Positions 28,215 to 57,049 of a DNA stretch of 64,000 nt are shown here, one piece after another. Under the pieces are notes generated by a model. It saw only the letters and a program-made list of their open reading frames with translations, searched no databases and was not told the DNA's origin. The position numbers and the translations under genes were made by a program. How positions within the stretch are numbered: the stretch's first letter is position 1; every line of letters starts with the position of its first letter. Location: assembly GCA_965240325.2 (NCBI GenBank), contig OZ251233.1, forward strand, positions 372,001 through 436,000, written 5' to 3'. The DNA is from Rebecca billardiae RCC1528 (Eukaryota > Protista > Haptophyta).

Positions 28215-28614
28215 CGCGAGGACGTACCAGGGAGATGCGATCGACTGGGAGTCCTGGCGGTGGGGCCGGCCGGCCAGCGGAGAATCTGCGCTCACGATCA
28301 TCAGGCTCTTGATCAGGCAGTTAATTAAGGGCGGACGATACCAGAGAGGCAGAGATTCCTGGTTCGTCCGCCGCTGAGAACTTTCGTCGAAGTTCTGATC
28401 CCGGAGCGCTCACGGCGGGAAGCACGCAGGCGCGGTCGAGGACGCCACGGGCTCGGCCCACCAGCCGCCTCCCACCAGCCGCGGACACGCACCGCGCCTC
28501 CTCATCGCACGCTGCGATCGCGTCGTCACAGCCAAGAGCCGATCAGCAAGCAGAGTCGTCGAGGCACGGACGGCGTCGGACGAGCCTCCGCGGGGAGCCC
28601 AGCAGGCGCTGGCG

Positions 28615-29347: not shown

Positions 29348-31722
29348 GTGGCCGCGCTCGCGGTGCCGCGCTCGGAGACGGCGGCGGCGGTGAGCGCGTC
29401 GAGCGCCGCCTTGACGCGCGCGCCGTCGCGCCGCGCGCGCACCGCCTCGAGCCGTCGCAGCTGCGCCGCGCGCACGCTGTCCGCGTCGATCACCCGGACG
29501 TCCGCGGGCGAGCCGGGTGCCGCGCCGCCGGCGCGATCGGCGCCGCCCGCGGGTGCGGGCGTGTCGGCGTAGCGGTTGACGCCGACGATCACGTCGCGCC
29601 CCGCGTCGATGCGCGCCTGCTTGCGCGCGGCGCTCTCCTCGATCCGTGCCTTGGGCACGCCCGACGCGACCGCCTTGGCCATGCCGCCTGCGCGCGCCGC
29701 GCGCAGGCGAGGAGGGGGAGGCGGCGGGCCGGCGGCGGCGGTCGGGCGCGCGAGCGCGCGGCCGGCGCGCCTCGCGCGCCGGGCGCGCGGACAGACGCGC
29801 AGCGCACGGCCTCGCGCCGAAAGCGCCGCCGCACGCGGCCGGCGCGCGCACCGAGACCCTCCACCTCGGCGATCAGCTCGCGCGCGCCCTGCGCCAGCTG
29901 CGCCGTGAGCGTCTCGACGTAGTACGAGCCCCCCAGCGGGTCCGCCACCTCGGGCAACCCCGACTCCTGAGCGGAGGCGGGGCGCGCGGGGAGGGCGAAG
30001 GGGCGGGCGGTCGCGGCGTGCGCGCGCGCGCGGGCACTGCCGGCGGTGCGCACGGCGGCGCCCCGCGGCTCCGCGCGTGTCGCAGGCGCATGCACGCGGC
30101 CGCATGCGGCGCGCCCGTGCGCGCGTGCTTGCTTGCGTGTGTGTCCGCGTCCGCGCACGCGCACACGCACACACACGCGGCGCACGCGCGCACACGCGCA
30201 CGCACGCGCACACACGCGCACGCGCACTCGCGCACGCACGCGCACGCACGCGCACACACGCACGCACACGCGCACACACGCGCACGCACGCGCACACGTA
30301 CGTGCAGCAGGATGAGCTGAGTGTTGCGCGCCACCTGCGCGGACAGCTCCGTGGGCAGCCCGACCGCCTCGTCGAACGAGTTTGTGTGCAGCGATTGCGT
30401 GCCGCCCAGCACGGCCGCCATCGCCTCCACCGTCGTGCGCACCACGTTGTTGAGCGGCTGCACGCGCGCGCGCGGAACGGGCCGGTCGGGGGCCGGGGCT
30501 GAGGTGCGCGCCGCGCGCGGCTCTCCGCCGCCACGCGTGCGGTCGGCCCGTCGGCCCGCACCGCCCGTGTGCCCTGCCGCAGCCGAGGGCGCGCGCGCCG
30601 CACGCGTGGCGGCGCGGCGCGCGCGCCCGCACCTGCGCCTCCGTGAGCGACCAGCCCGACGTCTGGCAGTGCGTGCGCAGCAGCAGCGAGCGCGGGTTGG
30701 CGGGCTCAAAGTGCTGCTGCATCAGCTCGGCCCACAGCTGGCGCGCGGCGCGCAGCTTCGCCTACGCGGCGGCACGGCGGGGGCGAGCGGCGGGAGCTGG
30801 CCCGGTGAGAGAGACACCAACCAACGCGCTCGCACGCGCGCAAGGAGGTGTGGGCGCCGCCCGGCCGTGGCGGCCAGCGACCAACCGCTGGCTGCGAGCA
30901 GGGCGCGTGCCAGCGCCGGCGCGCTGCGCGCGCGCGCCGTTGCTGCACCCGCGCCGGCCCCCGCCCGAGGGCACGCCTCGGCGCGCCCTCGCGCCCGCCT
31001 CGCGCCCCCACCGCGCGCACGCACGCACGCACCACCTCGACAAAAAAGTGCATGCCGATCCCGAAGAAGAAGGAGATCCGAGGCGCGATCTTGTCGACGC
31101 AGATGCCGCGCGAGGTGGCGGCGCGCACGTACTCGAGCCCGTCCGCGAGCGTGTACGCCAGCTCGAGCTTCGCGTCGGCGCCGGCCTCCTGCATGTGGTA
31201 GCCTGGCGGCGGCGAGGTAGGGCGGGCGCGCGGCGGCGGCGGCGCGGCGGAGGAGCGCAGCGCAACCGTGGCGGTGTGAGCGCGTGGCAACGGAGCGATG
31301 GCGGGCGGGGGCGCGGCGCACCCGAGACCGAGATCGAGTTGAACTTGGGCATGTGCTCGGCCGTGTGCGCCATGATGTCGGCCACCACGCGCATGGACGG
31401 CTCTGGCGGGTAGATGAACGTGTTGCGCACCTGCGGCGCGCAGGGGGCGGGCGGGCGGTGAGAGCGCCGCTCCGCGCGCTCTGCGCCTCGGCTCCGCGGG
31501 GGCCGCCGCTTCGCAGCGACGCGCCGCCGTGCTGCCCCAGCGCACGCCCCTCCACTGCGCACCCCGCGCCTCTTCCCCTCTCGCCGCCTTGCACCCACGC
31601 GCTGCGCAGCCTTCACGCCGCGCACGCGTGTAAGCAGCGCACGTGAGCAGCAGCAGCAGCAGCAGCACACACGCACGCACACACACACGCACACGCACAC
31701 ACCATGAACTCCTTGAGGATGT

Positions 31723-31754
<32 letters not shown>

Positions 31755-32541
31755 CACACGCACCATGAACTCCTTGAGGATGTCGTTCTGGATCGTCCCA
31801 GACAGCTGCGCGGCGGGCACGCCCTGCCGCTCGGCGGCGACGATGTACATGGCGAGGACGGGCAGGACGGCGCCGTTCATCGTCATCGAGACGCTCACCT
31901 CGCCCAGCGGGATCCCGTCGAACAGGATCTGCATGTCCTCCACCGTGTCCACCGCCACGCCCGCCATCCCGACGTCGCCGCTCACGCGCGCGTGGTCTGA
32001 GTCGTACCCGCGGTGCGTGGGCAGGTCGAACGCGACGGAGAGGCCGGTCTGCCCCTTTGCCAGGTTGGCGCGGTAGAACGCGTTCGACTCCTCCGCCGTG
32101 CTGAACCCCGCGTACTGCCGCACCGTCCACGGCCGCCCCGTGTACATGGACGCGTACGGGCCGCGCGTGTACGGGAAGGTTCCGGGAACTTGCGGCAGCG
32201 CCGAGGCGCCGCCGAGGGTGGCGAGGTCGTCGGCGGTGTAGAGCGGCTTTCTGCGCCGACGCGAGCGACACGAATACGCGCACGCGCGCGGTGCGCAGCC
32301 GCCAGGCCGCGGCACGCTCAGCGCGACACCGCATCGCACACGCGCGCGCGCGCGCGCGCGCGGCGCATCGCGGCGCGCACATGGTGATGCCCTCACTCGT
32401 GTGCGTCGAGAGCTGGGCGAGCGGGTCATCCATCTTGAGCTCTTTCTTCGCGAGCTTCTCCCACGCCGCCAGGTGCGAGCACAGCCGCGCGGAGCCGTAC
32501 GCGCGCGCGCGGACGCCGCCAATGCGGCGGGCGGCCAGCAT
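28615..32541 (-). CDS. MMUT: Methylmalonyl-CoA mutase (adenosylcobalamin-dependent), mitochondrial, 8 exons
   Basis: Arg-rich presequence; [61 protein letters not shown] and B12-binding GQDGHDRG. Seven GT-AG introns (e.g. 32251-32380, 31431-31763). Confidence 0.97.
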
Positions 32542-32735
32542 TTTGCGATTCGTCCGCGCCGGCCAGGTTTCGTCGGCGAAAAGAGCCGACGAGCTCGCCG
32601 GACTCGTCGGGTCCTGGATGCCGCTGTCGCGCGCTTGCGGCAGGCGGCAGGCCAGGACTCCCGGCTGGTGGGCAGCGGAGATCAAACCGCCTTCGCGGCT
32701 CAGCGGACGAAAGTGCGACGCGGGCGGGCGGCGCG

Positions 32736-34720
32736 ATGGCGGCGAGCGGCGCGCGCGCCCTCGCGTCCTTGCACAAGCCGGAGCAGCGCTTGGTGGCGTA
32801 CATGTTCGAGTACTGCCTCGAGCAGGGCCTCGCCCACCTCGCACAAGCGCTGACCAATGATGTGAAGGATATTCACAATCAGCTTTCGGACATCGGCGTG
32901 ACGCCCAACCTCGAGGAGAAGCAGTTCATGTACGCGCTCCAGACGCTGGAAGCGAGCGTACTTGAGGCTGAGACCCTCGACGACCTCCTCGGCGTCTACC
33001 TCCAAATGCTGCGCGATGACTTTGGCGCCGACCCGGCCGAGGTGCGCCGGCTCGAGCTCGCAATGCGCGCACACGCGGTCGTGCGCGCGTTCGAGACGTG
33101 CTTCGACGAGGACAAGGGCGAGTGGGCGGACTGGGTGCAAGCAAAGAAGGCGCTCGGCTCGGCCTTCCCCAAGCTCGGCGCGCCCGGGCACAACCCGGGC
33201 AAGGCGCCCGCGCCGAGCCAGGCACAGGCGCAGCCGCCGCCCTCGCACGAGCAAGCGTACCGCGCCGATTACGAGGAGCTGCGCCGCAGGCTGTGCCGCA
33301 TGATCGAGGACAGCGTGCAGAAGGCCGAGCCCGTGCGCGATCGCATGCGCCAGCTCGTCGACGAGTACCCGCCGAGCGCGCTCACCTCCGTCTTCCGCGA
33401 GGTCGTGCTGCACACGCGCGCGCGCTGGCTGCGCGCGCCATCGCACCGCAGCGCGCTCAGTAACTACCTGCTGCGGCAGCGGGCGCGCGCCGGCGGGGAC
33501 GCGGCGGCGGGCGCGGAGGAGAGCGGGGGTGAGGATGCGGAGGAGGCCCCCGCCACCGCCACGGAGGCGGACGCGGCGGCTGCGCCCGCGCAGCCGCCGC
33601 CGCCGCAGCAGCAGGGGGGGGCAGAGGCGGAGGCGGAGGACGAGGCGGAGGAGGGCGAACTGACCGCACGGCGCGCGGCTGCCGCGGCGGCAGCGAAGAA
33701 AGACCGCGGCGTCGACCACGGTGGCAGCTCCGCCACGGGCAAGCGGAAGGCGGGCGCGGCGAGCGCGCACGCGCCCACCGCCGCCGTCGCCGCGGATGGC
33801 TCGGCCGCGGAGATGCCGCCGCCGCCGCAGCGGCAGAAGCCCGCGGCGGGCAAGCGGCCCGCGCACCGGGGTGGCTCGCGCATCGCCGTTGTGCAGGACT
33901 CGATGGAGCTCGACGACTCCGTCGAGCCCGACGCCGTCGAGGAGGACGACGGCGAGGAGGAGGAGGAGGAGACGGCCGCGCTGGCTGCGCAGGCAGCGAA
34001 GCGCGGGCGCGGCGCGGGCAGGACCGCCGCCGGAGCCTCGCGGCGCGTGGACGCAGACAGCTCACTCGAGGAGCTGTCGAGTGCGGCCGGCAGCGAGGCG
34101 GCGGCCGGCAGCGAGGCGCCGCCGCGCCCGCCGCGGCAGGACGTCTCGCGCAACCCGCTCGCGCCCACCGGCCGGCCTTCCAAGACGGCGCGCGTGCCGG
34201 CACCCCAGCTGGCCATCTCGGGCGCGGCGGGGAAGGTCGTGCGCCCGCCCACGACCGGCGCCGCGCGCAAGCGCATCGCCTGGACGCACGACGAGGTGCG
34301 CGCGCGCGCGGTGCCGCGCGCGGGCCGCCCCCTGCGCCGCGCGCCGCCCGCCCGCCGCTCACCGCCTGGCTCCACTTGCGGTGCGCGCGCGCGCGCGCGC
34401 GCACAGACCAAGGCGCTGCTCGACGCTCGGCAGGATCTCATCAACCGGCACGACACGACGAACATGTGGGCCAAGATCCTCGCCCAGATCAAGCCCGATC
34501 TCATCAGTGCGCGCCGCGCGCGCCCGCCCCGCCGTGCGCCTCGCGGCGGTGCCGCCATCGGACCGTCGGGCCGACACGCTTCCGCCGCCCCGCGCGCGCC
34601 GCCCTGGCCCCGCCGCGCCGCCGCGCCGCCGCAGCCGATCGCACCAACATCGACCTCAAGGATCGGTTCCGCCAGGTGAAGAACAAGTTGGACGAGTACG
34701 GCTCGCACTACACGCTGTGA
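32736..34720 (+). CDS. TRF-like telomere-repeat-binding protein (C-terminal telobox Myb), 3 exons
   Basis: Introns 34296-34406 and 34507-34634 give [15 protein letters not shown]...MWAKIL...[14 protein letters not shown]-terminal helical domain and acidic/low-complexity linker. Confidence 0.75.
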
Positions 34721-39708: not shown

Positions 39709-42700
39709 ATGGCGGGGCAGACTGTGAGGCCCAGCCAAACCGCCGGCGAAGCGGAGGAGCCCGCAGAGGAGGCCTGGCTCGCCGATGCCGCCGGCGAGGT
39801 GGCCTCCCCGCCAGGCGTGGCCTCGGGCCGCCCGTCCCACCCCGACAGTTCGCACGACGCGCCGGTCGAGGAGGACGCCGCGCTGCAGGCGATGCTGCGC
39901 GCAGACGAGCAGCAGGCGGCGCAGGCGCACAGCCGCAGCGCGCGCTCGCCGAGGGCGGCGCCCGTCGAGGAGGAGGTGATGCCCGGCGCGTCCCCGCGCG
40001 CAGACGGACCGGCTGCAGGCGCCGCCGCGCTCGCCGCCCCGCAGGACCCCCTGGGCCCAGCCGCGCGCGCGTCGTCGCATTCGCTCCTCGGCGCGGCGGC
40101 GACGGTTGCCGCCGACAGGGTGGCCGAGGCGTCCTTCGGCGGCTGGGGCGAGGAGGGCGAGCAGGACGGGCTGGTCGAGGCGGCACAACTCGCCGCGAGC
40201 GCCGCCGCGGCCGACGCCGCCGCGCAGCTGCAGCCCCCTCGCCAGGGCGCGGGCGGCGCGAGCACGCAGCGCACCTCGCCGCTCAAGCCGTCGCCGCGCG
40301 CCCGCGCGGCTGCCGCCACGACTGCCGCGGCGCAGCCGGGCGGCGGGCCGAGCGCGAGTGGCGCCGGCGCTGGGCCGGCGCGCCGTGCCGGCGCGCAGCC
40401 GGCCCCGACCGAGCAGCGCCAGCCGGCCAAGCCCAGCGCCGCGCGCCCCGGTCGCTTGCCCGCGCAGCCGGCGGCCGGCGGCGCGCAGCAGCCGGGCGCA
40501 GCCGGCGGCGCGCCGGCGGAGGCGCGCGCGGCGCCGGCACGGGCCGAGCCAGCCGCGGCGGCGGGCGCGGGCGCGCGCGCTGCCAGCGCACTCGCCGCCG
40601 CGGAGCGCTCTCGACCCGGCTCCAGCCGCACGCCGCCGAGCGCCAGCGCCACCGCTACCGCCGCCGCCGCCGCCGCCGCTCCTCCCGCCGAGGCGACGAC
40701 GGCGGCCGACGCCCGCGGCACGCGCGCCGTGCCGACGGCCGCTGCGGCGGGCGGCGCGGCGGAGGCGGCGCGTCCGGCCGGCGCGGCCGGCGTGGGCGCG
40801 GCCGGCGCGGCGGCGGAGGCCCAGCCGCAGCCGGCTCCGCGGGCTGAGCCCCCGTCCGAGCCTGCGTCGGTCCTGCCCGCGCGCGCCGCACCGTTGGGCT
40901 CGGCGGCAGCGAGCGCAGGGCACGCGCCCGCGCGGCCTGGCGGCAGCGACGGGCCTGCTGCGGCGGCGGCGGCCGCGGCGGCAGCGGCGGCGGCGGAGGG
41001 CGACACGCCGCCGGCCGCCGCCGCGCCGCCGAAGAGGAAGGGCAAGGCCGGTGCCGCGGGCAAGGGTGCGCGCCACGCCGAGCATTGCGCCCGCCGCGCC
41101 CGCCGCGCCCGCCGCGCCCGCCGCCGCGCGGCGCGCGGCGCGCGCACTCCGCGGCGCGCGCCGCTCATCGCCGCCACGCCCGCTCCCGCCGCGCGCGCGC
41201 GCCGCTCGGTCGCGCGCAGGCGGCGCTCGGTCGCGCGGCCGACGGCGCGTCTCGCCCGAGGCGGAGCCGCCGTTTGCGCACGTGCCGCCGGGCGCACGCG
41301 TCGACGAGTACGGCGCCGCGTGGGCGGAGCAGGAGGCGCGCGAGCGCGCCAAAAAGGCCTCGGCGAAGAAGCGCGTCTCGTCGCGGCTGCGGAACGAATC
41401 CGCTTCGGCCGCGCTCGCCGAGTACGTCGCGCGGCGCGAGCAGGCGCGGATGCGCGCGCACTGGCCGAGGCGGCACCGCGCGGCCGCGGTCGCCGCGTAC
41501 AACGCTGCGCTCGGCGAGGCGGCCGCGGCGGGCGGCGACGGCAGCGCCGCGTCACGCTCGGAGCACGGCGGCGCGGCGGTGTCTGGGATGATCCGGCTGG
41601 ACGGCTCGCCGCCGCAGCCGCGCGCGGGCGGCGGGGCGGCGGGCCTGCCGCCGCTGCGCGCGGGCGCGGGCGCGGCGGGGAGCGGCGCGGCAGTGGCGCG
41701 CGCGCGCCGCGCCGCGCGCGGCCTCGGCGGCGCGCCCGGCCGCGCCACCTTCGCCGTGGCGAGCGAGCTGCCCGAGCGCTCGCCGCCGCTCGGCCTGCCG
41801 CCGTCGCCGTCCGCGCGCTCCAACCCGACCGGCCGCACGCCGCACACCGGCCCGCGCGCGCGGCGCGGCCGGGCCGCGGCCGGCGGCGCGCGCGGCGGCG
41901 CGGAGGGCGGCAGCGGCGGCAGCTCGCCCGTGCGGCTGCCCGCGCTCGGCGCCGCCGGCCCGGGCTCGCCCGGCCAGCAGCAGCACGCGCTCGCGCGCAC
42001 GGCGTGGCGACCGGACGATCTGTCCACCTCGCCCGTCGGCGCGCCGCGTCAGCCCGGCGGCGCTGGCTCGGGGCTTGACGCGCGCGCGGAGGCGCACGCG
42101 CGCGCGCGCGCCGAGCTGCTGCAGGCGCGGCTCGAGCGCCTCGCCGCCGCGCGCGAGGCGTCGATCTCGCGCGCGCGGCACGTCGTCACCGACTTCATCG
42201 ACGCGGAGGAGCGGCTGGAGGCATTGCGGCCCACCGCCAACGCGCGCACCGAGCAACTGCGCTACGCGCGCGAGCTCGGCCGCGCCAAGCGCGCGCTCGC
42301 GACACAGCTGGGCTTCATCCGCGCGCAGGGCGTCGAGCTGGCCGAGGCCGCGGCCGAGCTGCGCCTCGTGCTGCTCCGCCGCCCGCGGCCGGGCGCGGAC
42401 GGGCCGGGCTCGGGCGCGCGCGCCCGCCCCAAGCCCCTCTCCGCGAGCGCCGCGGCCGAGGCGTCGGCGGCGGTGCTTGCAGCCGCCGCGCCCGACGGCT
42501 CGCAGGCGGAGGAGGCGACCGCGCCGCCCTTCGAGTGGGAGGGGGAGGCGTACGTGGCGCGGATGCTCGCCGACCTCGGCTTCCTCGCCTCGACCGACGC
42601 GCTCGGCCGCTGGCTCACGCCGCCCGCGCAGCTCGAGGCGGCGGTCAGCGCGGCGCTCGACGAGATCGCGATCTCGGGCAAGGCGGAGCCCGACCCACTC

Positions 42701-45700
42701 GCCCGATCAGACGCGGAGCGCGCGGCGGCGCGCGGCGCGGCGGAGGCGGCGGTGAGCGCGCTCGGGCCGTTCCTCCTCCCGCCGGCCGACGCGGACCACG
42801 CGCCCGCCGGCGGCGGCGGCCGCGCCGCGCTGTTCCGGCAGCGCCGCGTGGCCGGCGCCGCGGCGGACGCGTCGGGCGCGGGCGGCACGCTCCACTACGC
42901 GCCGGCGCTGAGCGCGGCCGAGCGGCTGCGCGCGGAGGCGGCGCACGCGTTCGTGCTGGCGGAGGCGGCGCGCGCGGCGCAGCGCGTGGTCGCCGCCACC
43001 TCCGCCGCGCGCGCCGCGCACGAGGACGCGGCGCACGAGGCGCAGCTCTCCGCGCTCGCGCTGTCGCAGCTCTCGCCCGCGCGCCAGATCCAGCCGCCGC
43101 GCGCGCGCGCTGCACACGAGGCGTCGCCGTCTGAGACGGAGACGGGCGTGCTCGGTGCGCGCGCGGTGGAGGGCGGGGGTGCGAGGGGCGGCGCCGAGCT
43201 GCCCGCGCTCGGGGGCCGCGCGAAGCCCGCGCCCAGGCCTGAGCACGCCGCGCAGCCCACGCACAGCACCCACGGCCTCCCCCTCACCACCACGCTCTCG
43301 GGGCCGGCGGCGCGCGCCAAGCACGGCGGCGCTAAGCGCGGCGGCGCGCCGAGTGAGACGCGTGGCGGTGGCGGCGGCGCACCCGAGGGCGTCGCTGGCA
43401 CGCCGCCGCCCGCCGTGCCCGCCAGCATCCGCGCGCCCGACGACGAGCCGCCGGCCGCGCGGCGCGCGGCGGGCGCGGCTCTCGGCCTGCGCGCGCACGA
43501 CTCGCCGGCAGCGGGCGGCACCTCACAGGCGGATGACGACGAGGAGGAGGAGGAGGTGGGCATTGATGGGCGGTTTGCAAACGCGCGCTCGCCGGCCGTC
43601 CTGCGCGGGCGGCTGCACGGCGCCGAGTCGGCGGAGGCCGACCTGGACGGCGAGATGGCGTCTCCCGAGCCCGCGTCGCAGCGGGAGGGGGTCGTCGCCT
43701 TCGCGCCGTCCGCCACCGTGCCGACGGGCGCGGCTGGCGCTGAGCGCTCGCCGCCGCGCGTGCCAGCGCCGGCCGCCGACGCCGACGCGGCCGCCGAGCC
43801 CGACGCCGCCGACGACGACATGGGCTCGGACGCGGGGCCCGCGCTCGAGCCGCACGCGCGCGATGCGGACGACTACGACCCGCTCGCGAGCGCGCAGCAC
43901 GGCGCGGGCGCGGCGCCAGCGGCTGCCGCAGCGGACGGCGCGGGCGAGGCGAGCGCGCGCGTGCACGCGCACGCGCCCAGCGGCGCGCCCGGCGCCGCAG
44001 CACTCGGCGCGCCCCACGACGCGGAGGACGAGGAGGACGAGCTCGCGCCGTTCGCCGCGATCGAGCAGGGCACGCCCACCGTCGGCCGTGACGCGCGCGG
44101 CGAGTTCGTCGGCACGCAGTCGATGCGGTGGAAGCGGCCGCCCGCCGAAGCCGAGGACTCGGCCGGCGGCGAGGCCTCGCCGTTCGGCTTCGCCAGCGAC
44201 ATCTTCGACTCGCCCACCAAGCTCGGCCGCTCGCGCTCGTCCAACTCGGCGTCGGTGCGCGGCTCGGCGGACTCGCCGCTGCCGCCCGCCATGCGGCTGC
44301 CGCCGCCGCCGGACGCGGCGTCCTTCTTCGACGAGGACGACGAGCGCGCGACCGCCGAGCGGCGCGCGGCGGACGCGGCGGCGGATGCGCACGCGTTCGA
44401 GCTCGGCCTGCTCTCCGACCTCGCCTTCGCGCAGATGCAGCCGCCGCAGCCGGCGGACGCGCACGGCGGCGCCGAGCTGCTCGATGAGCACGGCCAGCCG
44501 CTCGTGCCGGCCGAGGACGGCATGGGCGGGCTGAGCGAGGACGAGCTGCGCGCCGCGCTCTACTACCTGGGCGGGGCGGCCGCGTACATCCAGGCGCACG
44601 CGCGCGGGATGGTCGACCGGCGGCGCGTGGCGGCGCACGTGGCGGCGGCGCGCCGAGGGCCGCGGCGCGAGGATGCGCCAAGCCCTGCCGCGCCCGCGCC
44701 CGACGCCAAGCCCGACACCGCGGCAGGTGTGCCCGCTGCGGACGTCGGTGCCGCCGCACACGCAGAGGGTGCGCCTGCCGCCGCGCCCGCGGACGCACTC
44801 GCGGCGGGCGCTGCCGACGAGGGAGCGCACACCGCCGCCGCACCGGCTGTCGGAGCCGGAGCGAGCAAGGGCGGCTCGGACGACGCGCCGTGGCGCGCGG
44901 ATGGGGCGGCCGCCGCGCCCGCGGATGCGGAGCTGGCCGGTATGGCGGACGACTTGCAGCAGCAGGCGGCTCGCATCCAAGCAGCAGCGCGCGGGCGGCA
45001 GACGCGGCGAGCACTTGCCGGCGACGCCGACGACGCGGCCGCCGCGCCCGCGGATGCGGAGCTGGCCGGTATGGCGGACGACTTGCAGCAGCAGGCGGCT
45101 CGCATCCAAGCAGCAGCGCGCGGGCGGCAGACGCGGCGAGCACTCGCCGGCGGTGCTGACGACGCGGCTGACGCGGCCGCCGCGCCCGCGGATGCGGAGC
45201 TGGCCGGTATGGCGGACGACTTGCAGCAGCAGGCGGCTCGCATCCAAGCAGCAGCGCGCGGCCGGCAGACGCGGCGAGCACTCGCCGACGGTTCTGACGA
45301 CGCGGCAGACGCGGCCGCCGCGCCCGCGGATGCGGAGCTGGCCGGTATGGCGGACGACTTGCAGCAGCAGGCGGCTCGCATCCAGGCAGCAGCGCGCGGG
45401 CGGCAGACGCGGCGAGCACTCGCGGACGGTGCTGACGACGCGGCCGACGCGGCAGATGCGCCCGCGGATGCGGAGCTGGCCGGTATGGCGGACGACTTGC
45501 AGCAGCAGGCGGCTCGCATCCAAGCAGCAGCGCGCGGGCGGCAGACGCGGCGAGCACTCGCCGGCGGTGCTGACGACGCGGCTGACGCAGCCGCCGCGCC
45601 CGCGGATGCGGAGCTGGCCGGTATGGCGGACGACTTGCAGCAGCAGGCGGCTCGCATCCAAGCAGCAGCGCGCGGGCGGCAGACGCGGCGAGCACTCGCC

Positions 45701-48700
45701 GACGGTTCTGACGACGCGGCCGCCGCGCCCGCGGATGCGGAGCTGGCCGGTATGGCGGACGACTTGCAGCAGCAGGCGGCTCGCATCCAAGCAGCAGCGC
45801 GCGGGCGGCAGACGCGGCGAGCACTCGCCGGCGGTGCTGACGACGCGGCTGACGCGGCCGCCGCGCCCGCGGATGCGGAGCTGGCCGGTATGGCGGACGA
45901 CTTGCAGCAGCAGGCGGCTCGCATCCAAGCAGCAGCGCGCGGGCGGCAGACGCGGCGAGCACTCGCCGGCGGTGCTGACGACGCGGCTGACGCGGCCGCC
46001 GCGCCCGCGGATGCGGAGCTGGCCGGTATGGCGGACGACTTGCAGCAGCAGGCGGCTCGCATCCAAGCAGCAGCGCGCGGCCGGCAGACGCGGCGAGCAC
46101 TCGCCGGCGGTGCTGACGACGCGGCAGACGCGGCCGCCGCGCCCGCGGATGCGGAGCTGGCCGGTATGGCGGACGACTTGCAGCAGCAGGCGGCTCGCAT
46201 CCAGGCAGCAGCGCGCGGGCGGCAGACGCGGCGAGCACTCGCTGACGGTGCCGACGACGCGGCTGACGCGCCCGCGGATGCGGAGCTGGCCGGTATGGCG
46301 GACGACTTGCAGCAGCAGGCGGCTCGCATCCAAGCAGCAGCGCGCGGGCGGCAGACGCGGCGAGCACTCGCCGGCGAAGCCGACAACGCGGCTGACGCGG
46401 CCGCCGCGCCCGCGGATGCGGAGCTGGCCGGTATGGCGGACGACTTGCAGCAGCAGGCGGCTCGCATCCAAGCAGCAGCGCGCGGGCGGCAGACGCGGCG
46501 AGCACTCGCCGGCGGTGCTGACGACGCGGCTGACGCGGCCGCCGCGCCCGCGGATGCGGAGCTGGCCGGTATGGCGGACGACTTGCAGCAGCAGGCGGCT
46601 CGCATCCAAGCAGCAGCGCGCGGGCGGCAGACGCGGCGAGCACTCGCCGGCGGTGCTGACGACGCGGCTGACGCGGCCGCCGCGCCCGCGGATGCGGAGC
46701 TGGCCGGTATGGCGGACGACTTGCAGCAGCAGGCGGCTCGCATCCAAGCAGCAGCGCGCGGCCGGCAGACGCGGCGAGCACTCGCCGGCGGTGCTGACGA
46801 CGCGGCAGACGCGGCCGCCGCGCCCGCGGATGCGGAGCTGGCCGGTATGGCGGACGACTTGCAGCAGCAGGCGGCTCGCATCCAGGCAGCAGCGCGCGGG
46901 CGGCAGACGCGGCGAGCACTCGCTGACGGTGCCGACGACGCGGCTGACGCGCCCGCGGATGCAGAGCTGGCCGGTATGGCGGACGACTTGCAGCAGCAGG
47001 CGGCTCGCATCCAAGCAGCAGCGCGCGGGCGGCAGACGCGGCGAGCACTCGCCGGCGAAGCCGACAACGCGGCTGACGCGGCCGCCGCGCCCGCGGATGC
47101 GGAGCTGGCCGGTATGGCGGACGACTTGCAGCAGCAGGCGGCTCGCATCCAGGCAGCAGCGCGCGGGCGGCAGACGCGGCGAGCACTCGCTGACGGTGCT
47201 GACGACGCGGCCGACGCGGCAGATGCGCCCGCGGATGCGGAGCTGGCCGGTATGGCGGACGACTTGCAGCAGCAGGCGGCTCGCATCCAAGCAGCAGCGC
47301 GCGGGCGGCAGACGCGGCGAGCACTCGCTGACGGTGCTGACGACGCGGCCGACGCGGCAGATGCGCCCGCGGATGCGGAGCTGGCCGGTATGGCGGACGA
47401 CTTGCAGCAGCAGGCGGCTCGCATCCAAGCAGCAGCGCGGGGGCGGCAGACGCGGCGAGCACTCGCCGGCGGTGCTGACGACGCGGCTGACGCAGCCGCC
47501 GCGCCCGCGGATGCGGAGCTGGCCGGTATGGCGGACGACTTGCAGCAGCAGGCGGCTCGCATCCAGGCAGCAGCGCGCGGGCGGCAGACGCGGCGAGCAC
47601 TCGCTGACGGTGCCGACGACGCGGCTGACGCGCCCGCGGATGCAGAGCTGGCCGGTATGGCGGACGACTTGCAGCAGCAGGCGGCTCGCATCCAGGCAGC
47701 AGCGCGCGGGCGGCAGACGCGGCGAGCACTCGCTGACGGTGCCGACGACGCGGCTGACGCGCCCGCGGATGCAGAGCTGGCCGGTATGGCGGACGACTTG
47801 CAGCAGCAGGCGGCTCGCATCCAGGCAGCAGCGCGCGGGCGGCAGACGCGGCGAGCACTCGCGGACGGTGCTGACGACGCGGCCGACGCGGCAGATGCGC
47901 CCGCGGATGCGGAGCTGGCCGGTATGGCGGACGACTTGCAGCAGCAGGCGGCTCGCATCCAGGCAGCAGCGCGCGGGCGGCAGACGCGGCGAGCACTCGC
48001 TGACGGTGCCGACGACGCGGCTGACGCGCCCGCGGATGCAGAGCTGGCCGGTATGGCGGACGACTTGCAGCAGCAGGCGGCTCGCATCCAAGCAGCAGCG
48101 CGGGGGCGGCAGACGCGGCGAGCACTCGCCGGCGGTGCTGACGACGCGGCTGACGCAGCCGCCGCGCCCGCGGATGCGGAGCTGGCCGGTATGGCGGACG
48201 ACTTGCAGCAGCAGGCGGCTCGCATCCAGGCAGCAGCGCGCGGGCGGCAGACGCGGCGAGCACTCGCTGACGGTGCCGACGACGCGGCTGACGCGCCCGC
48301 GGATGCAGAGCTGGCCGGTATGGCGGACGACTTGCAGCAGCAGGCGGCTCGCATCCAGGCAGCAGCGCGCGGGCGGCAGACGCGGCGAGCACTCGCTGAC
48401 GGTGCTGACGACGCGGCCGACGCGGCAGATGCGCCCGCGGATGCGGAGCTGGCCGGTATGGCGGACGACTTGCAGCAGCAGGCGGCTCGCATCCAGGCAG
48501 CAGCGCGCGGGCGGCAGACGCGGCGAGCACTCGCTGACGGTTCTGACGACGCGGCCGCCGCGCCCGCGGATGCAGAGCTGGCCGGTATGGCGGACGACTT
48601 GCAGCAGCAGGCGGCTCGCATCCAGGCAGCAGCGCGCGGGCGGCAGACGCGGCGAGCACTCGCCGGCGGTGCTGACGACGCGGCTGACGCGGCCGCCGCG

Positions 48701-51700
48701 CCCGCGGATGCGGAGCTGGCCGGTATGGCGGACGACTTGCAGCAGCAGGCGGCTCGCATCCAGGCAGCAGCGCGCGGGCGGCAGACGCGGCGAGCACTCG
48801 CGGACGGCGCGGCCGACGCGGCCGCCGCGCCCGCGGATGCGGAGCTGGCCGGTATGGCGGACGACTTGCAGCAGCAGGCGGCTCGCATCCAAGCAGCAGC
48901 GCGCGGGCGGCAGACGCGGCGAGCACTCGCCGGCGAAGCCGACAACGCGGCTGACGCGGCCGCCGCGCCCGCGGATGCGGAGCTGGCCGGTATGGCGGAC
49001 GACTTGCAGCAGCAGGCGGCTCGCATCCAGGCAGCAGCGCGCGGGCGGCAGACGCGGCGAGCACTCGCGGACGGTGCTGACGACGCGGCCGACGCGGCCG
49101 ACGCGCCCGCGGATGCGGAGCTTGCCGGTATGGCGGACGACTTGCAGCAGCAGGCGGCTCGCATCCAAGCAGCAGCGCGCGGGCGGCAGACGCGGCGAGC
49201 ACTCGCCGGCGAAGCCGACAACGCGGCTGACGCGGCCGCCGCGCCCGCGGATGCGGAGCTGGCCGGTATGGCGGACGACTTGCAGCAGCAGGCGGCTCGC
49301 ATCCAAGCAGCAGCGCGCGGGCGGCAGACGCGGCGAGCACTCGCCGGCGGTGCTGACGACGCGGCTGACGCAGCCGCCGCGCCCGCGGATGCGGAGCTGG
49401 CCGGTATGGCGGACGACTTGCAGCAGCAGGCGGCTCGCATCCAAGCAGCAGTGCGCGGGCGGCAGACGCGGCGAGCACTCGCCGACGGTTCTGACGACGC
49501 GGCCGCCGCGCCCGCGGATGCGGAGCTGGCCGGTATGGCGGACGACTTGCAGCAGCAAGCGGCTCGCATCCAAGCAGCAGCGCGCGGGCGGCAGACGCGG
49601 CGAGCACTCGCCGGCGGTGCTGACGACGCGGCTGACGCAGCCGCCGCGCCCGCGGATGCGGAGCTTGCCGGTATGGCGGACGACTTGCAGCAGCAGGCGG
49701 CTCGCATCCAAGCAGCAGCGCGCGGGCGGCAGACGCGGCGAGCACTCGCCGACGGTTCTGACGACGCGGCCGCCGCGCCCGCGGATGCGGAGCTGGCCGG
49801 TATGGCGGACGACTTGCAGCAGCAAGCGGCTCGCATCCAAGCAGCAGCGCGCGGGCGGCAGACGCGGCGAGCACTCGCCGGCGGTGCTGACGACGCGGCT
49901 GACGCAGCCGCCGCGCCCGCGGATGCGGAGCTTGCCGGTATGGCGGACGACTTGCAGCAGCAGGCGGCTCGCATCCAAGCAGCAGCGCGCGGGCGGCAGA
50001 CGCGGCGAGCACTCGCCGGCGGTGCTGACGACGCGGCTGACGCAGCCGCCGCGCCCGCGGATGCGGAGCTGGCCGGTATGGCGGACGACTTGCAGCAGCA
50101 AGCGGCTCGCATCCAAGCAGCAGCGCGCGGGCGGCAGACGCGGCGAGCACTCGCCGGCGGTGCTGACGACGCGGCTGACGCAGCCGCCGCGCCCGCGGAT
50201 GCGGAGCTTGCCGGTATGGCGGACGACTTGCAGCAGCAGGCGGCTCGCATCCAAGCAGCAGCGCGCGGGCGGCAGACGCGGCGAGCACTCGCCGGCGGTG
50301 CTGACGACGCGGCTGACGCAGCCGCCGCGCCCGCGGATGCGGAGCTGGCCGGTATGGCGGACGACTTGCAGCAGCAGGCGGCTCGCATCCAAGCAGCAGT
50401 GCGCGGGCGGCAGACGCGGCGAGCACTCGCCGACGGTTCTGACGACGCGGCCGCCGCGCCCGCGGATGCGGAGCTGGCCGGTATGGCGGACGACTTGCAG
50501 CAGCAAGCGGCTCGCATCCAAGCAGCAGCGCGCGGGCGGCAGACGCGGCGAGCACTCGCCGGCGGTGCTGACGACGCGGCTGACGCAGCCGCCGCGCCCG
50601 CGGATGCGGAGCTTGCCGGTATGGCGGACGACTTGCAGCAGCAGGCGGCTCGCATCCAAGCAGCAGCGCGCGGGCGGCAGACGCGGCGAGCACTCGCCGA
50701 CGGTTCTGACGACGCGGCCGCCGCGCCCGCGGATGCGGAGCTGGCCGGTATGGCGGACGACTTGCAGCAGCAAGCGGCTCGCATCCAAGCAGCAGCGCGC
50801 GGGCGGCAGACGCGGCGAGCACTCGCCGGCGGTGCTGACGACGCGGCTGACGCAGCCGCCGCGCCCGCGGATGCGGAGCTTGCCGGTATGGCGGACGACT
50901 TGCAGCAGCAGGCGGCTCGCATCCAAGCAGCAGCGCGCGGGCGGCAGACGCGGCGAGCACTCGCCGGCGGTGCTGACGACGCGGCTGACGCAGCCGCCGC
51001 GCCCGCGGATGCGGAGCTGGCCGGTATGGCGGACGACTTGCAGCAGCAAGCGGCTCGCATCCAAGCAGCAGCGCGCGGGCGGCAGACGCGGCGAGCACTC
51101 GCCGGCGGTGCTGACGACGCGGCTGACGCAGCCGCCGCGCCCGCGGATGCGGAGCTTGCCGGTATGGCGGACGACTTGCAGCAGCAGGCGGCTCGCATCC
51201 AAGCAGCAGCGCGCGGGCGGCAGACGCGGCGAGCACTCGCCGGCGGTGCTGACGACGCGGCTGACGCAGCCGCCGCGCCCGCGGATGCGGAGCTGGCCGG
51301 TATGGCGGACGACTTGCAGCAGCAGGCGGCTCGCATCCAAGCAGCAGTGCGCGGGCGGCAGACGCGGCGAGCACTCGCCGACGGTTCTGACGACGCGGCC
51401 GCCGCGCCCGCGGATGCGGAGCTGGCCGGTATGGCGGACGACTTGCAGCAGCAAGCGGCTCGCATCCAAGCAGCAGCGCGCGGGCGGCAGACGCGGCGAG
51501 CACTCGCCGGCGGTGCTGACGACGCGGCTGACGCAGCCGCCGCGCCCGCGGATGCGGAGCTGGCCGGTATGGCGGACGACTTGCAGCAGCAGGCGGCTCG
51601 CATCCAAGCAGCAGCGCGCGGGCGGCAGACGCGGCGAGCACTCGCCGGCGGTGCTGACGACGCGGCTGACGCAGCCGCCGCGCCCGCGGATGCGGAGCTG

Positions 51701-53512
51701 GCCGGTATGGCGGACGACTTGCAGCAGCAGGCGGCTCGCATCCAAGCAGCAGCGCGCGGGCGGCAGACGCGGCGAGCACTCGCCGGCGGTGCTGACGACG
51801 CGGCTGACGCAGCCGCCGCGCCCGCGGATGCGGAGCTGGCCGGTATGGCGGACGACTTGCAGCAGCAGGCGGCTCGCATCCAAGCAGCAGCGCGCGGGCG
51901 GCAGACGCGGCGAGCACTCGCCGGCGGTGCTGACGACGCGGCTGACGCAGCCGCCGCGCCCGCGGATGCGGAGCTGGCCGGTATGGCGGACGACTTGCAG
52001 CAGCAGGCGGCTCGCATCCAGGCAGCAGCGCGCGGGCGGCAGACGCGGCGAGCACTCGCCGACGGTTCTGACGACGCGGCCGCCGCGCCCGCGGATGCGG
52101 AGCTGGCCGGTATGGCGGACGACTTGCAGCAGCAGGCGGCTCGCATCCAAGCAGCAGCGCGCGGGCGGCAGACGCGGCGAGCACTCGCCGGCGGTGCTGA
52201 CGACGCGGCTGACGCAGCCGCCGCGCCCGCGGATGCGGAGCTGGCCGGTATGGCGGACGACTTGCAGCAGCAGGCGGCTCGCATCCAAGCAGCAGCGCGC
52301 GGGCGGCAGACGCGGCGAGCACTCGCCGGCGGTGCTGACGACGCGGCTGACGCAGCCGCCGCGCCCGCGGATGCGGAGCTGGCCGGTATGGCGGACGACT
52401 TGCAGCAGCAGGCGGCTCGCATCCAGGCAGCAGCGCGCGGGCGGCAGACGCGGCGAGCACTCGCCGACGGTGCTGACGACGCGGCCGCCGCGCCCGCGGA
52501 TGCGGAGCTGGCCGGTATGGCGGACGACTTGCAGCAGCAGGCGGCTCGCATCCAGGCAGCAGCGCGCGGGCGGCAGACGCGGCGAGCACTCGCCGGCGGT
52601 GCTGACGACGCGGCTGACGCAGCCGCCGCGCCTGCGGATGCGGAGCTGGCCGGTATGGCGGACGACTTGCAGCAGCAGGCGGCTCGCATCCAAGCAGCAG
52701 CGCGCGGGCGGCAGACGCGGCGAGCGCTCATGGGCCCCGGTGGTTCTGCTGCGGCTTCAGCACTGGGCGAGGAGGGCATTCGTTCTCCTGTTTTTGCAGC
52801 CGCCGCTGCGCCTGCCGTGCTCTCGGCGCCAGTGGATCTGTCCCTCGCGCTGGACTCAGCGCCCTCAGCAGACCCTCCGCCGGCGGTACCAGCCCCTGCC
52901 GCATCAGAGTCTACCCACGCGGATGCGCTCGAGGCTTCGCACTCGTCGCATGAGCACGCGGCTGGTGATGGAGGTGATGCGCCAGCGGAAGCTTCCGCTG
53001 ATGGTGGCATTGCTGGGCCTCCCGCGCACTCGGATCCGGTCGAGGCAGGCCCAGCTACGGCTGCCCCTGCGCCTGCAGGCTCGCCCGCCCACGAGGTGAC
53101 AGCGCTGGCTGAGGGCGGAGCAGCACACGCCCCCGAGGCGGCCCACGTCTCGGCATCCGCCACGCCAGCTGCTGCGGGTGACGCGGCGGAGGAGGGAGCA
53201 GGTAACTTCGAGAAGGTGCCGCCGCCACTACCTGTCTCTGCTGCTGCAGTTGACGGCAGTGCGGGCTTGGCCGAGCCCGCGCATGCAGACGATGCAGGCG
53301 CGGGCATCGCCCCCGAATCACCGCGACTCGCGCCACCTGCGGCTGCTGAGCACGGGGGAGTGTCGCCACAGCAGGCAGGCGATGGCAGCGGCGGCATCAC
53401 ATCGCCGCGAGGCGGCGCAGTTGCTGCCCCTGTGATGTTTGGAGACGAGCACCACGCTGGCATCGTGGACTCGAATGTCGATGGCAGCAGCCAAGGCCAG
53501 TCCCCCAGCTAG
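39709..53512 (+). CDS. Giant (~4,549 aa) IQ-motif array protein, 2 exons
   Basis: ATG at 39709; intron 41066-41219 joins it to the 4468-aa track frame. Contains 58 tandem AARIQAA(A/V)RGRQTRR motifs plus one divergent IQ (YIQAHARGMVDRR). Confidence 0.85.
44905..52730 (+). repeat. Coding tandem array of 129/138-bp units (58 IQ repeats) with higher-order structure
   Basis: First repeat ATG at 44942, last at 52655: 17x129 + 40x138 = 7713 bp. A Val variant recurs at 49451, 50399 and 51347 (948-bp period). Confidence 0.97.
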
Positions 53513-53690: not shown

Positions 53691-56600
53691 TCACATCGCG
53701 GGAGTCACCCTGCGTCCGATGAGGCGGTCGGCGGGAGTCGCATGCAAGCTCAGTACGGGTTGGACGGGAGACGAGTCATCTCGCGACGACTGCTGGCCCT
53801 GAGTGCTGGCTCGGGGCGGCGAGGCAGGCGTCGACGATGATGAGCGTGAAGAGCAGCTGCCGTCACTCGGGGCATCGTCGGGCAGGAAGAACATCGATGT
53901 CGTGCGCGGGCGGAAGCGCACGGTGTCATCCTCGCCGTGGTAGTCCTGCAGCGCGACGGCATCGAGGGTGTGGACACGCCGCCGGTGGCCGCTCGCATTC
54001 TGGCTCGGCCCGCGCACTTGGCGCGCGAGGACAGCCGTCACGCGCTGCCGCTGCTCGTCGGGCCCTTCGTCCTCGTCAGCGGCGGTAGACGGTGCAGCGG
54101 AGCCCTCGCCGCAATGAAGTGACTGCGACCTCCGCTTTGCCCGACCGCCGACGAGCCTTGGCGCGGACATGGATGGGGCGAGGTCCTGCACGCGCGCCTC
54201 AGCCTCGGCGGCAGCCGCGTCGCCGAGCGCGGCCGCCGACGGCTGCATGAAGCTCTCGAGCACCCGGACCACGCCTTTCACGCCCTTCTCGTCCTTGTCC
54301 AGGCTCAGGTCGAGGCCGGCGCTCTCAAACTCGTCGCGCTCTGGGCAGCCGACCGGGTCGCCCGTCATGCCGATGATCATGCCGGTGAAGCCGGCCTCGC
54401 GCAGCTTGCGAGTCGCGACTGTTCCGCTCATGTGAGGCATCTGCGCCCGCCGCGAAGGGGTGTGCACGCGATGGCAGCGGGCACAAGAGGCACAGTGAGC
54501 GGCAAGAGCGCTGGCGCCCCCTCGCCCGCGCCCGCCCGCCCGCGCCTGCCGCCTCCCTGCGCGCGCGCGCGCGCGCACCTGGTTGTCCATCACGATCACA
54601 TCGTACTGCGGCCCGTTCTGGAGGAGAACCTTCTCCACCGCCTCGGCGCCATGCCACGCGCAGTCGTACTCGGCGCCGAGGCGCTCGAAGACGCGGCGGG
54701 GGAAGGTGCGGTGCAGGATGCGGTCGTCGTCCACGTAGAGGCAGCGGAACGAGGGTGGAAACTCGAAGCCCTCGAGCTCGGGCCGGCGCTTTGGCCCCTT
54801 GGTGGGGCGAGCCAGGCCGGGCGCGTCGGTGGGCTGCGGCTGAGCCGTTAGAGCAGCAGTAGCCGCCGCCGTCGCCGCCACCGGCTGCAGTGAATGCTCA
54901 GCTTTGGCAGTCGACGCCGAGGGTGCTGCTGGCGGCTTCCGCGCGCTGGAGTGGTCGCTGCTCGCGAAGTCTTGCTGCTGCGCGCTCTCGCAGATGCCAC
55001 GCCGATCCTCGGACGGTGTCGCGCTCAGGCGGCTCACCGCGAGTCGAGTGTGCAGCGTGGGCGTCGACTTGCCGCTCGAACTGCGGCCCGAAGCCACCGC
55101 GGCCTGATCCGCAAGCCACAAGTTGAGCCGCAGTTCGAAGGTGGTGCCCTGCCCCGGGCCAGCCGAGTCGAGATGCAGCGCGGAGTCGTCGTGCAGCTGG
55201 AGCAGCTGGCGCGTGATGCTCAGCCCAAGCCCCGTGCCCCCGTTGCCCTCCATCTGCCCCTTGCCCACCTGCGAGAAGGGCTCGCCCTTGCGCAGCTGCT
55301 CGAGCTCGTCCGCGCCCAAGCCGATGCCGTTGTCCTTGATGGCGATCACGACGGTCCGCATCTCGGGCATCGCCGCGGGATGGCGCGCGCACGGGCCACT
55401 CGAATCGTTGTCGGCCTGGAGTGGACGGAGCTGGCCTCGCTTGCCCTCCGTGCGCGCGCTGAGCGTGATGGTGCCCCCGCTCTTTGTGAACTTGAGCTGC
55501 GCGCGGGACAGAGGCGTGCGCTTGTCGAGTCAGTGGGGGGAAAGCGCAAGACGCCTCCGCACGTGCGCGCGTGCGCACCGCGGGGCGGGGCGCGGCAGCG
55601 CGGAGGCACAACGCAGCGGCGGGGCAGCGTGGATTGCGCGCGCGCGGCGCGCACCGCGTTCGAGAGGCCGTTGTTCATGCACTGCTGCAGCCGGCGTGCG
55701 TCCGCGATGAAGGGCGTGTTGGCGAGCTCGTGCGTGATCGGCGCGTGGTGGATCGCCACGCCCTTGGCCTCGGCGAGGCCCTTGAACGTCGTGCTGACGG
55801 CGTCGATCAGATGCGATATGATGAACGGCACGGGCACGAGCACCAGCCGGCCGCTGTCAATCCGCTCAAAGTCGAGCATGTCCGAGACGATGTGCTGCAT
55901 GAGCGTGGACATCTTGCCCATCGTCGCCACCAGGTCGATCACCACGGAGCTGCCGACCGGCATGGACGCGTCCAGCTCGTCGAGCATGGAGACGACGTTC
56001 GAGACGGCGAGCAGCGGCGTGCGAAGATCGTGCATCACCATACGGATGAGACGGCTGCGAGCCTGCTTGCCCGCCCGACTCGCCTCGAGCTGCAGCCGCT
56101 GCGCTGCCTCGACTCTCTCGAGCCCTTGTGCGGTTCTCATCGCGCTGCTCGCATCAGCAGAGACACGTGCGGCGGTGTGCTCAAAGTGAAAGTTCGAGCG
56201 GTGGGAGACGACGAGCGAGAGCCTACCCATGAGCATCGCCAGTACAACGAGCACGAAGATGGCGGTTGTCTCGACCGCCTGGCGCACTCCGTATACGGCG
56301 AGCTCGTCGCCTGGCGCGGCCTTGGCCATCGCGAGCGCACGCCGGAGGTTGAGCGCCGCGAGAATGCCCTGCTGGAGCACCAAGTACGCGCTCAGGGTGC
56401 ACGCAGCGACCGCCTGCAGCGGGAGGAACATGGCGGCAAAGGCGGGGATCACGATCAGGTGCGCCGTCGCCCCTCGAAACGCAAACCACCGGGTGGGCGA
56501 CCCAGCATCATCATCGAGCTGGGGTTGGGCGAGCAGCGTCGCGGTCCCGGGCGCCAGGGCAAACGCGGCCAGAACTGCGAGTCCAACGAGTGAGGCAGTC

Positions 56601-57049
56601 GTGAGCACGTCGATGCTGGCAACGGTGAAACTGTGTGCGCTCTGCACCGCAGCGCCGAGAGCCACCAAGCCGAGGGAGACGAGCACGGCGAGCACACCCA
56701 ACCAGCACGTCGTATTGGCGGCGACGGCCTCGTTGGCAACGAAGTTCATCATGGTAAACTCCGCAGCGGTCACCACCGCGAAGAAGAGGGCGAAGAGGAC
56801 ACCGGATAGCATCAGGCGTCGTGCGTACAGTGCACGCAGCTCTGTGCTGTATGCGCGCTCGTCCTGCTCATCGGCAAAGCTGAGCGTGCGCGTGAACTTG
56901 GGCGCGGGCACATCGAACGTCGGGAGCGTGTCTGGCATGGACTGCTTGGTACTCGACGACGAGGTGCTGGCATCAGGAGTGTGAGCGGCGCCGACGGCGC
57001 ACTCGACGTCACATAGTTGGCCTTGCGGATGCACCTCCGCCGAGCGCAT
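53691..57049 (-). CDS. Membrane-bound hybrid histidine kinase (TM sensor-HisKA-HATPase-receiver), 3 exons
   Basis: H-box MHDLRTPL; N-box NNGLSNA|LKFT; G1 DNGIG; G2 GGTGLGL; receiver CLYVDDD...VMDNQ|MPHMSG...MTG...K. Introns 55497-55654 and 54441-54578. Confidence 0.93.

Follow-up and report, generated by a model that had tools for sequence, protein, structure and literature searches.

In the necks of myosins, IQ motifs follow each other at a spacing of ∼23 to 25 amino acids (aa), with contacts between adjacent light chains. ASPM carries CH and ASH domains in its N-terminal part, and in PEP-19 (PCP4) an acidic stretch and an IQ motif form one functional unit, the acidic part tuning Ca2+ exchange on the bound calmodulin. 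Neuromodulin (GAP-43) and neurogranin have a higher affinity for apo-calmodulin than for Ca2+-calmodulin (PMC3589724), and in the axoneme calmodulin or the calmodulin-like DRC8 is found on the IQ motifs of DRC9-11 (PMC10266980). For human ASPM, 81 IQ motifs are given (for example, in PMC2988714), and the repeats of Sfi1 follow the consensus AX7LLX3F/LX2WK/R, in which a Trp is conserved (PMC2173958). Here, we analyzed a 64,000-nucleotide (nt) stretch of the haptophyte Rebecca billardiae RCC1528 (contig OZ251233.1, positions 372,001 to 436,000 of the forward strand; "the window"), which contains a candidate gene for a giant protein with 59 IQ motifs between positions 39709 and 53512 (+). On the basis of its sequence, we hold with moderate confidence that this is a real protein-coding gene, probably with two exons and a product of ∼4,549 aa, in which modules of an acidic stretch and a complete IQ motif dock proteins of the calmodulin family.

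Architecture of the locus

A continuous open reading frame (ORF) of 4,468 codons at 40106-53512 (+) contained all IQ motifs. Using the regular expression [FILV]Qxxx[RK]Gxxx[RK]xx[FILVWY], 59 matches were found in its translation, 58 of them in a tandem array and one divergent (IQAAARGRQTRRAL 55 times, IQAAVRGRQTRRAL 3 times, and IQAHARGMVDRRRV once). The array motifs read IQAA[A/V]RGRQTRRAL, the first at 44975 and the last at 52688, and successive IQ motifs lay 46 aa apart in 40 cases and 43 aa apart in 17, with a single distance of 129 aa. At the DNA level, a degenerate pattern of the core hit 58 sites, all on the + strand within 44975-52725 and none elsewhere in the window, with 0 expected; Tandem Repeats Finder (TRF) reported a period of 138 with 56.8 copies and 93% matches. 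The initial annotation had described 58 near-identical in-frame IQ repeats plus one divergent IQ at 43/46-residue spacing, and the regular expression, the DNA pattern, and TRF all bear this out. The locus comprises the following features:

39709..41065 (+): candidate exon 1, 452 codons from the ATG; Ala/Pro/Gly/Glu-rich low-complexity N terminus; translation starts with M
41066..41219 (+): candidate GT-AG intron of 154 nt, predicted from the sequence, joining the 39709 frame to the array frame
41220..44917 (+): unique part of exon 2, ∼1,230 aa, mostly with few hydrophobic residues; no relatives found
42074..42376 (+): helical hairpin or coiled coil predicted by AlphaFold2 (AF2), the only confidently modeled piece in the unique region
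44588..44629 (+): divergent independent IQ motif (IQAHARGMVDRRRV), a regular-expression match 129 aa ahead of the first array IQ
44918..52729 (+): array of 58 tandem units, each 43 or 46 aa long (2,604 aa in all), defined by TRF, regular expression, unit alignment, and DNA pattern
49262..51561 (+): higher-order repeat inside the array, ∼2.4 exact copies of a 7-unit (948-nt) block, from an exact self-match
52730..53512 (+): C-terminal tail, 260 aa plus stop, Ala/Gly/Pro/Ser-rich with a net charge of −29; weaker coding status

Within the array, a 33-aa core (PADAELAGMADDLQQQAARIQAAARGRQTRRAL) was constant except for an A-to-V exchange in 3 units, and all remaining protein variation was confined to Asp/Ala/Gly linkers of 10 or 13 aa (30 or 39 nt). 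Each unit is laid out as an acidic helix half, ADAELAGMADDL (charge −4), a basic IQ half, RIQAAARGRQTRRAL (+5), and the linker (−3), giving a net charge of −2. The spacers between cores carried a net charge of −6 over 32 aa and were thus acidic, as had been claimed. Not a single F, W, or Y was present in the entire array. Its 3′ block contained an exact 1,352-nt self-match at an offset of 948 (49262-50613 versus 50210-51561; unit string FBIBEBE FBIBEBE FB), while the 5′ 60% of the array was a non-periodic mixture of unit variants. Since a 7-unit block is repeated exactly, recent unequal crossing-over is indicated; by this route, including the block duplication, the array may recently have been enlarged and kept homogeneous.

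The gene model of the initial annotation, with a start at 39709 and a length of ∼4,550 aa, survived in part. Because the ATG at 39709 is out of frame with the array, whose continuous ORF starts at 40106, this length requires an intron or frame change near 41066-41219. The phase of GC content at third codon positions (GC3) and the codon-usage score favored the 39709 frame from 39709 to ∼41100 (exon 1), the array frame was coding-like by both from ∼41200 onwards, and the sliding codon-usage score placed the frame switch between ∼41060 and ∼41240. The candidate intron, bounded by AGG/GTGCGC and GCGCGCAG/GCG (slashes mark the predicted splice sites), has a length of 1 mod 3 and leaves a joined frame without a stop, so that its removal would yield a protein of 4,549 aa. 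Base composition at the locus is extreme (75 to 85% GC, against 71.8% for the window overall). The value for the window is compatible with the 73.25% GC published for Diacronema lutheri (PMC8379373). Directly ahead of the candidate intron, the stretch 40300-41200, which spans the poly-Ala end of candidate exon 1, reached ∼88% GC, lacked codon-position periodicity, and was rich in GCC/GCG-type microsatellites.

The products of exon 1 and exon 2 were searched separately. Pfam returned no domain in 40106-45040, in exon 1, or in the C-terminal tail, and exon 1 and most of the unique region were poor in hydrophobic residues. For aa 656 to 994, AF2 predicted two helices (residues 2 to 52 and 59 to 102 of the query) with predicted local distance difference test scores (pLDDT) of 77 to 91, the remainder being below 50.

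Coding frame and IQ subtype of the array

Stop codons close only one of the six frames over the array; the length of the ORF is therefore no evidence of coding and was dropped as such. The IQ frame alone ran without a stop from the unique flank through the array. For the analysis of variation, the array was cut into 58 units beginning at PADAEL, among which 30 distinct DNA units encoded 11 distinct protein units. The 99-nt core had 10 variable sites, 9 of which fell on third positions of the IQ frame, all nine being synonymous; with an expectation of 27% synonymous for random changes, the observed 9 of 10 corresponds to a binomial P of ∼1.4e-4. Length changes in the linkers were exclusively multiples of three, without a single frameshift in 7.8 kb. 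A codon-usage model trained on four Pfam-supported genes of the window ranked the IQ frame best of six in exon 1, in the unique region, and in the array, and GC3 in this frame was 0.91 to 0.98 across the 3.7-kb unique region that is continuous with the array. A chance origin of the motif was improbable in shuffle controls: the IQ regular expression was matched by 5 of 200,000 shuffles of one unit (2.5e-5) and, when the 1,232-aa unique region was shuffled 20,000 times, occurred in 13 of the resulting sequences. We judge the strand to be fixed by codon usage, by continuity with the unique region, and by this improbable IQ match. Together, these results make it most likely that the array codes for protein in the IQ frame. 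In the 33-aa core, purifying selection acts on the IQ-frame protein, while the linkers vary.

To place the repeat among known IQ motifs, a profile (A1) was built from 101 units of database proteins that share the long-period acidic-IQ layout. An array unit aligned to A1 with an hhalign probability of 96.8% (E = 2.3e-10, over 29 columns), and the divergent IQ with 84% (E = 7.5e-6). The divergent IQ (44588) reached 18.0 bits (E = 0.0024) against the IQ profile of Pfam (PF00612), below the gathering cutoff of 20.3 bits. Between the divergent IQ and the array unit, no pairwise similarity was detectable (E = 30); they therefore represent two independent IQ occurrences in one protein. Searched against PDB sequences, A1 matched Chlamydomonas CFAP91 (7ju4) and RSP23 (7jrj), Sp17 (8j07 and 9fqr), SPATA17, the IQ fusions of calmodulin with neuromodulin and neurogranin (4e53 and 4e50), and a protein with an AAA-type core domain in entry 8glv. 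The match list names only that domain, and we take the protein to be DRC11/IQCA1-like. IQAAARG variants like those of the array were also present in a CFAP91 orthologue (P0036). By profile, the array unit is therefore assigned to the IQ subtype of neuromodulin, neurogranin, Sp17, RSP23, and CFAP91. The resemblance to a neuromodulin/GAP-43-type basic IQ following an acidic stretch, which had been proposed earlier, is upheld by the matches of A1 to 4e53 and 4e50 and by the alignment of the unit to A1.

This assignment concerns the motif and not the protein family. Neuromodulin, neurogranin, and PEP-19 likewise place a complete basic IQ in an acidic context of low hydrophobicity, but they are small, with one IQ and no array, and the giant protein, which matched neither the neuromodulin nor the neurogranin family in Pfam, resembles them at the level of the motif only; membership in this group was not supported. 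CFAP91 (FAP91), RSP23, Sp17 (SPA17), and the presumably DRC11/IQCA1-like AAA protein share the IQ subtype, often in several copies 40 to 110 aa apart. In contrast to the 58 units here, axonemal IQ proteins have 1 to 10 motifs, and the domains that define them (CFAP91, NDK, RIIa, and AAA) are absent from the giant protein. The CFAP91, Sp17-like (RIIa), and CCDC96/113 families were rejected, as Pfam detected no CFAP91, RIIa, or CCDC113/96 domain in the giant protein. Very many IQ motifs in one polypeptide are also a property of ASPM, but there they are closely packed (an ASPM-like database match, P0043, had 48 to 50 IQ motifs at 23 aa). ASPM/Asp membership was rejected on account of the 43/46-aa spacing, compared with ∼23 to 27 aa, and of the lack of any Pfam domain ahead of the array. 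As in a myosin neck, consecutive IQ helices would each bear a calmodulin-family light chain; the spacing is about twice the ∼23 aa of the neck, as the initial annotation had pointed out, and no myosin head (motor) domain was matched by Pfam upstream of the array, so that membership among myosin heavy chains was rejected.

Long-period acidic-IQ arrays in other proteins

No relative of the unique region was found by word searches with a 1,228-aa piece, the whole ORF, or the 339-aa most structured piece, nor by an exhaustive HMMER search with aa 1000 to 1600. ESM Atlas gave no usable match for 10 units or for aa 656 to 994, and no relative was detected when metagenomes were scanned with the array or with aa 1199 to 1600. 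In the exhaustive search, which covered 1.84 billion proteins, there was no self-match, no orthologous array, and nothing above 43% identity; the product of the gene therefore seems to be absent from protein collections. The 49 proteins that were returned (P0001 to P0049) all aligned solely to the array part of the query.

About 36 of these 49 proteins were themselves tandem IQ arrays, with 3 to 26 strict IQ motifs, the median spacing of which was 38 to 67 aa, and with spacers composed of 13 to 40% Asp/Glu. They came from the copepods Tigriopus (Tk03051, P0002) and Lepeophtheirus (XP_040569707, P0004) and from numerous contigs of marine metagenomes and metatranscriptomes, and their consensus unit approximates EEEIDIDLxDPEVExAATKIQAGFRGHQTRKELK. 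The two closest Ala-rich matches, P0013 and P0036, lie on environmental contigs. Several had flanking domains, namely, RIIa (P0002 and P0009), CFAP91 (P0036), CCDC113/CCDC96 (P0042), and a GST/GDAP1-like domain (P0001 and P0002). In P0001, P0002, and P0009 (copepod and marine contigs), RIIa was followed by 11 to 25 acidic-IQ units and then by a GST/GDAP1-like domain, an architecture for which no description was found in the literature searched. The long-period acidic IQ layout is thus not unique to the giant protein, judging from these ∼36 sequences. It is widespread in marine eukaryotes and essentially undescribed: a limited literature search found no description of long-period acidic-IQ arrays as a class.

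The giant protein shares with these arrays the long period and the tandem arrangement of an acidic stretch and AAxKIQAxxRGxQTRK units, and two of them (P0009 and P0005) are also nearly homogeneous. It differs in motif number (58 + 1 compared with 3 to 26 strict IQ motifs), in position +4 of the motif (Ala, compared with mostly F, Y, or V), and in the lack of any flanking domain. WD40 proteins and other proteins with a period of ∼42 aa (P0010, P0022, and others) also scored E = 1e-8 to 1e-15 against the array query. E values of phmmer for one repeat against another are therefore inflated and untrustworthy, and those of the repeat query were not taken at face value. Common descent of the giant protein with the other acidic-IQ arrays is consequently unproven; similarity does not extend beyond the repeats, and homology and convergence are both compatible with it. 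By its layout, the giant protein would be an extreme orphan variant of this class, with 58 homogenized copies and without an anchoring domain.

Alternative explanations and a possible calmodulin store

Several observations weigh against a coding array that docks calmodulin. A single array unit scored only 10.2 bits (E = 0.72) against the Pfam IQ profile, below its cutoff, three units scored 9.3 bits, and a 400-aa stretch of the array gave no IQ row at all. The unit scores low because the usual aromatic and hydrophobic positions are absent. The perfect IQ consensus noted in the initial annotation therefore holds for the regular expression, which 59 of 59 motifs matched, but not for the Pfam profile. 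With Ala at +4, where most IQ motifs carry an aromatic or bulky residue, and without F, W, or Y, the unit could bind calmodulin with low affinity or have a different EF-hand protein as its partner. As to coding, an antisense ORF of 2,966 codons at 44563-53463 (−) has its wobble positions in common with the IQ frame; 8 of 9 sites are synonymous there as well, so that the synonymous pattern alone cannot assign the strand. In the tail (52730-53512), the frame was open for 261 codons, but GC3 was ∼0.6, compared with 0.81 to 0.98 in the other genes of the window, and the codon-usage score was approximately zero; the gene may in fact end at a position other than 53512. Finally, the number of copies is most open to doubt where the repeats are exact (49262-51561). 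The antisense mirror ORF is also a general caution for coding tests on GC-rich repeats.

It is somewhat unlikely that the array is translated without docking EF-hand proteins, serving as an Ala-rich, charge-patterned helical spacer or as a self-associating (electrostatic or heptad-like) repeat in which the IQ motif is a relic of the founder unit. The low Pfam IQ scores and the lack of any aromatic residue in 2,604 aa are consistent with such a helix. So is the AF2 model of four units, a near-continuous helix that shows dips or is briefly interrupted at the linkers (pLDDT, 87.6; predicted TM score [pTM], 0.58), which does not bear out the simply disordered spacers of the initial annotation; as a single-sequence model of an Ala-rich sequence, it is weak evidence. 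Compared with the PDB, this model gave only generic long-helix matches in Foldseek (E ≥ 0.2), and a phmmer search of four units against PDB sequences returned nothing meaningful. If fully helical, the array would extend over ∼390 nm (0.15 nm per residue × 2,604 aa). In addition, the −4 and +5 halves of each unit could pair with each other, and the L/M/L/I residues at −14, −11, −7, and 0 show, by eye, a heptad-like spacing. However, the IQ half is conserved as strictly as the rest of the core, with one conservative A-to-V exchange only, and its class-specific residues (A at +2, QT at +8/+9, R at −1, and L at +13) fit the IQ subtype. The IQAAARG variants of the CFAP91 orthologue and the second, independent IQ directly upstream of the array likewise argue for docking sites rather than a mere helix.

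An array that is mis-assembled or unexpressed is quite improbable. Such an array could be a coding-derived minisatellite with an inflated or collapsed copy number, it could be removed with an intron, or it could belong to a decaying gene. The exact 1,352-nt internal repeat, the uninformative length of an ORF in a sequence with five of six frames open, the failure to find the product in the protein collections searched, and the weak coding statistics of the tail would fit these scenarios. In contrast, 30 DNA unit variants in non-periodic order over the 5′ 60% are hard to obtain by mis-assembly. Synonymous-biased variation, the absence of frameshifts over 7.8 kb, and a frame that runs on from the 3.7-kb unique coding region upstream likewise argue against this reading. 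We therefore regard the array as real as assembled and very probably coding.

A centrin-binding contractile fiber protein, comparable to Sfi1 or to the giant centrin-binding proteins of ciliates and corresponding to the Ca2+-switchable elastic filament of the initial annotation, would agree with EF-hand docking sites strung along a very long helix (∼390 nm as estimated above) but is very unlikely, since the Sfi1 consensus (PMC2173958) needs W and F/L positions, the array lacks W and F, for which reason membership among Sfi1/centrin-binding repeats was rejected, and the profile matched calmodulin-type IQ sites and not Sfi1; with the Trp-containing consensus absent, the contractile idea is disfavored.

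The surroundings of the locus were also inspected. A hybrid histidine kinase at 53691-57049 (−) lies downstream of the giant gene in convergent orientation (HATPase_c and a weak Response_reg match in ORF 53694-55370; HisKA in ORF 55349-57049). Upstream are a protein of the Bestrophin_2 family at 27030-28301 (−; E = 7e-67) and an ORF at 30709-32844 (−) with a short match to methylmalonyl-CoA mutase that covers profile positions 204 to 262 only. None of these neighbors (histidine kinase, bestrophin, and methylmalonyl-CoA mutase fragment) points to a functional link.

If the gene encodes a calmodulin-docking protein, as we favor, the product would be a giant cytosolic scaffold without signal peptide, transmembrane segment, or known anchoring domain, the C-terminal 60% of which would be a string of 58 near-identical modules following one older, divergent IQ. 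Each unit could serve as the docking site of a single calmodulin or of a calmodulin-like EF-hand protein. As is usual for complete IQ motifs, the Ca2+-free form would be preferred, and one polypeptide could thus carry up to ∼59 light chains. At a spacing of 43 to 46 aa, about twice that of the myosin neck, adjacent calmodulins would not touch, and for this reason the product would act as a flexible string of beads that stores or concentrates calmodulin rather than as a rigid lever arm. By analogy to PEP-19, the acidic halves of the units could adjust how Ca2+ is exchanged on the calmodulin bound there. As far as the sequence allows, a calmodulin reservoir is plausible. The location in flagellar roots or the haptonema that the initial annotation had considered would be speculative, since the protein has no localization domain. 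What points to flagella is solely the frequent occurrence of this IQ subtype in axonemal proteins, the anchoring domains of which the giant protein lacks. Going further, the protein could be the largest known member of a widespread, undescribed group of acidic-IQ bead strings that serve as local, Ca2+-releasable stores of high capacity for calmodulin-family proteins or as rulers, ancestrally flagellar, with the module freed of its axonemal anchor and multiplied to 58 sites, and with ∼59 calmodulins buffered per molecule; we regard this wider proposal as speculative and rather unlikely.

For genome annotation, the locus is a clear case of a giant repeat gene that was apparently missed by protein collections. 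Long-period acidic-IQ arrays recur across marine eukaryotes, where they often adjoin ciliary domains. If the R. billardiae protein is expressed and binds calmodulin, it would offer ∼59 docking sites at a spacing that precludes contacts between light chains, a physical regime unlike that of myosin necks or ASPM, and would provide a test case for how calmodulin is stored or positioned in cells.

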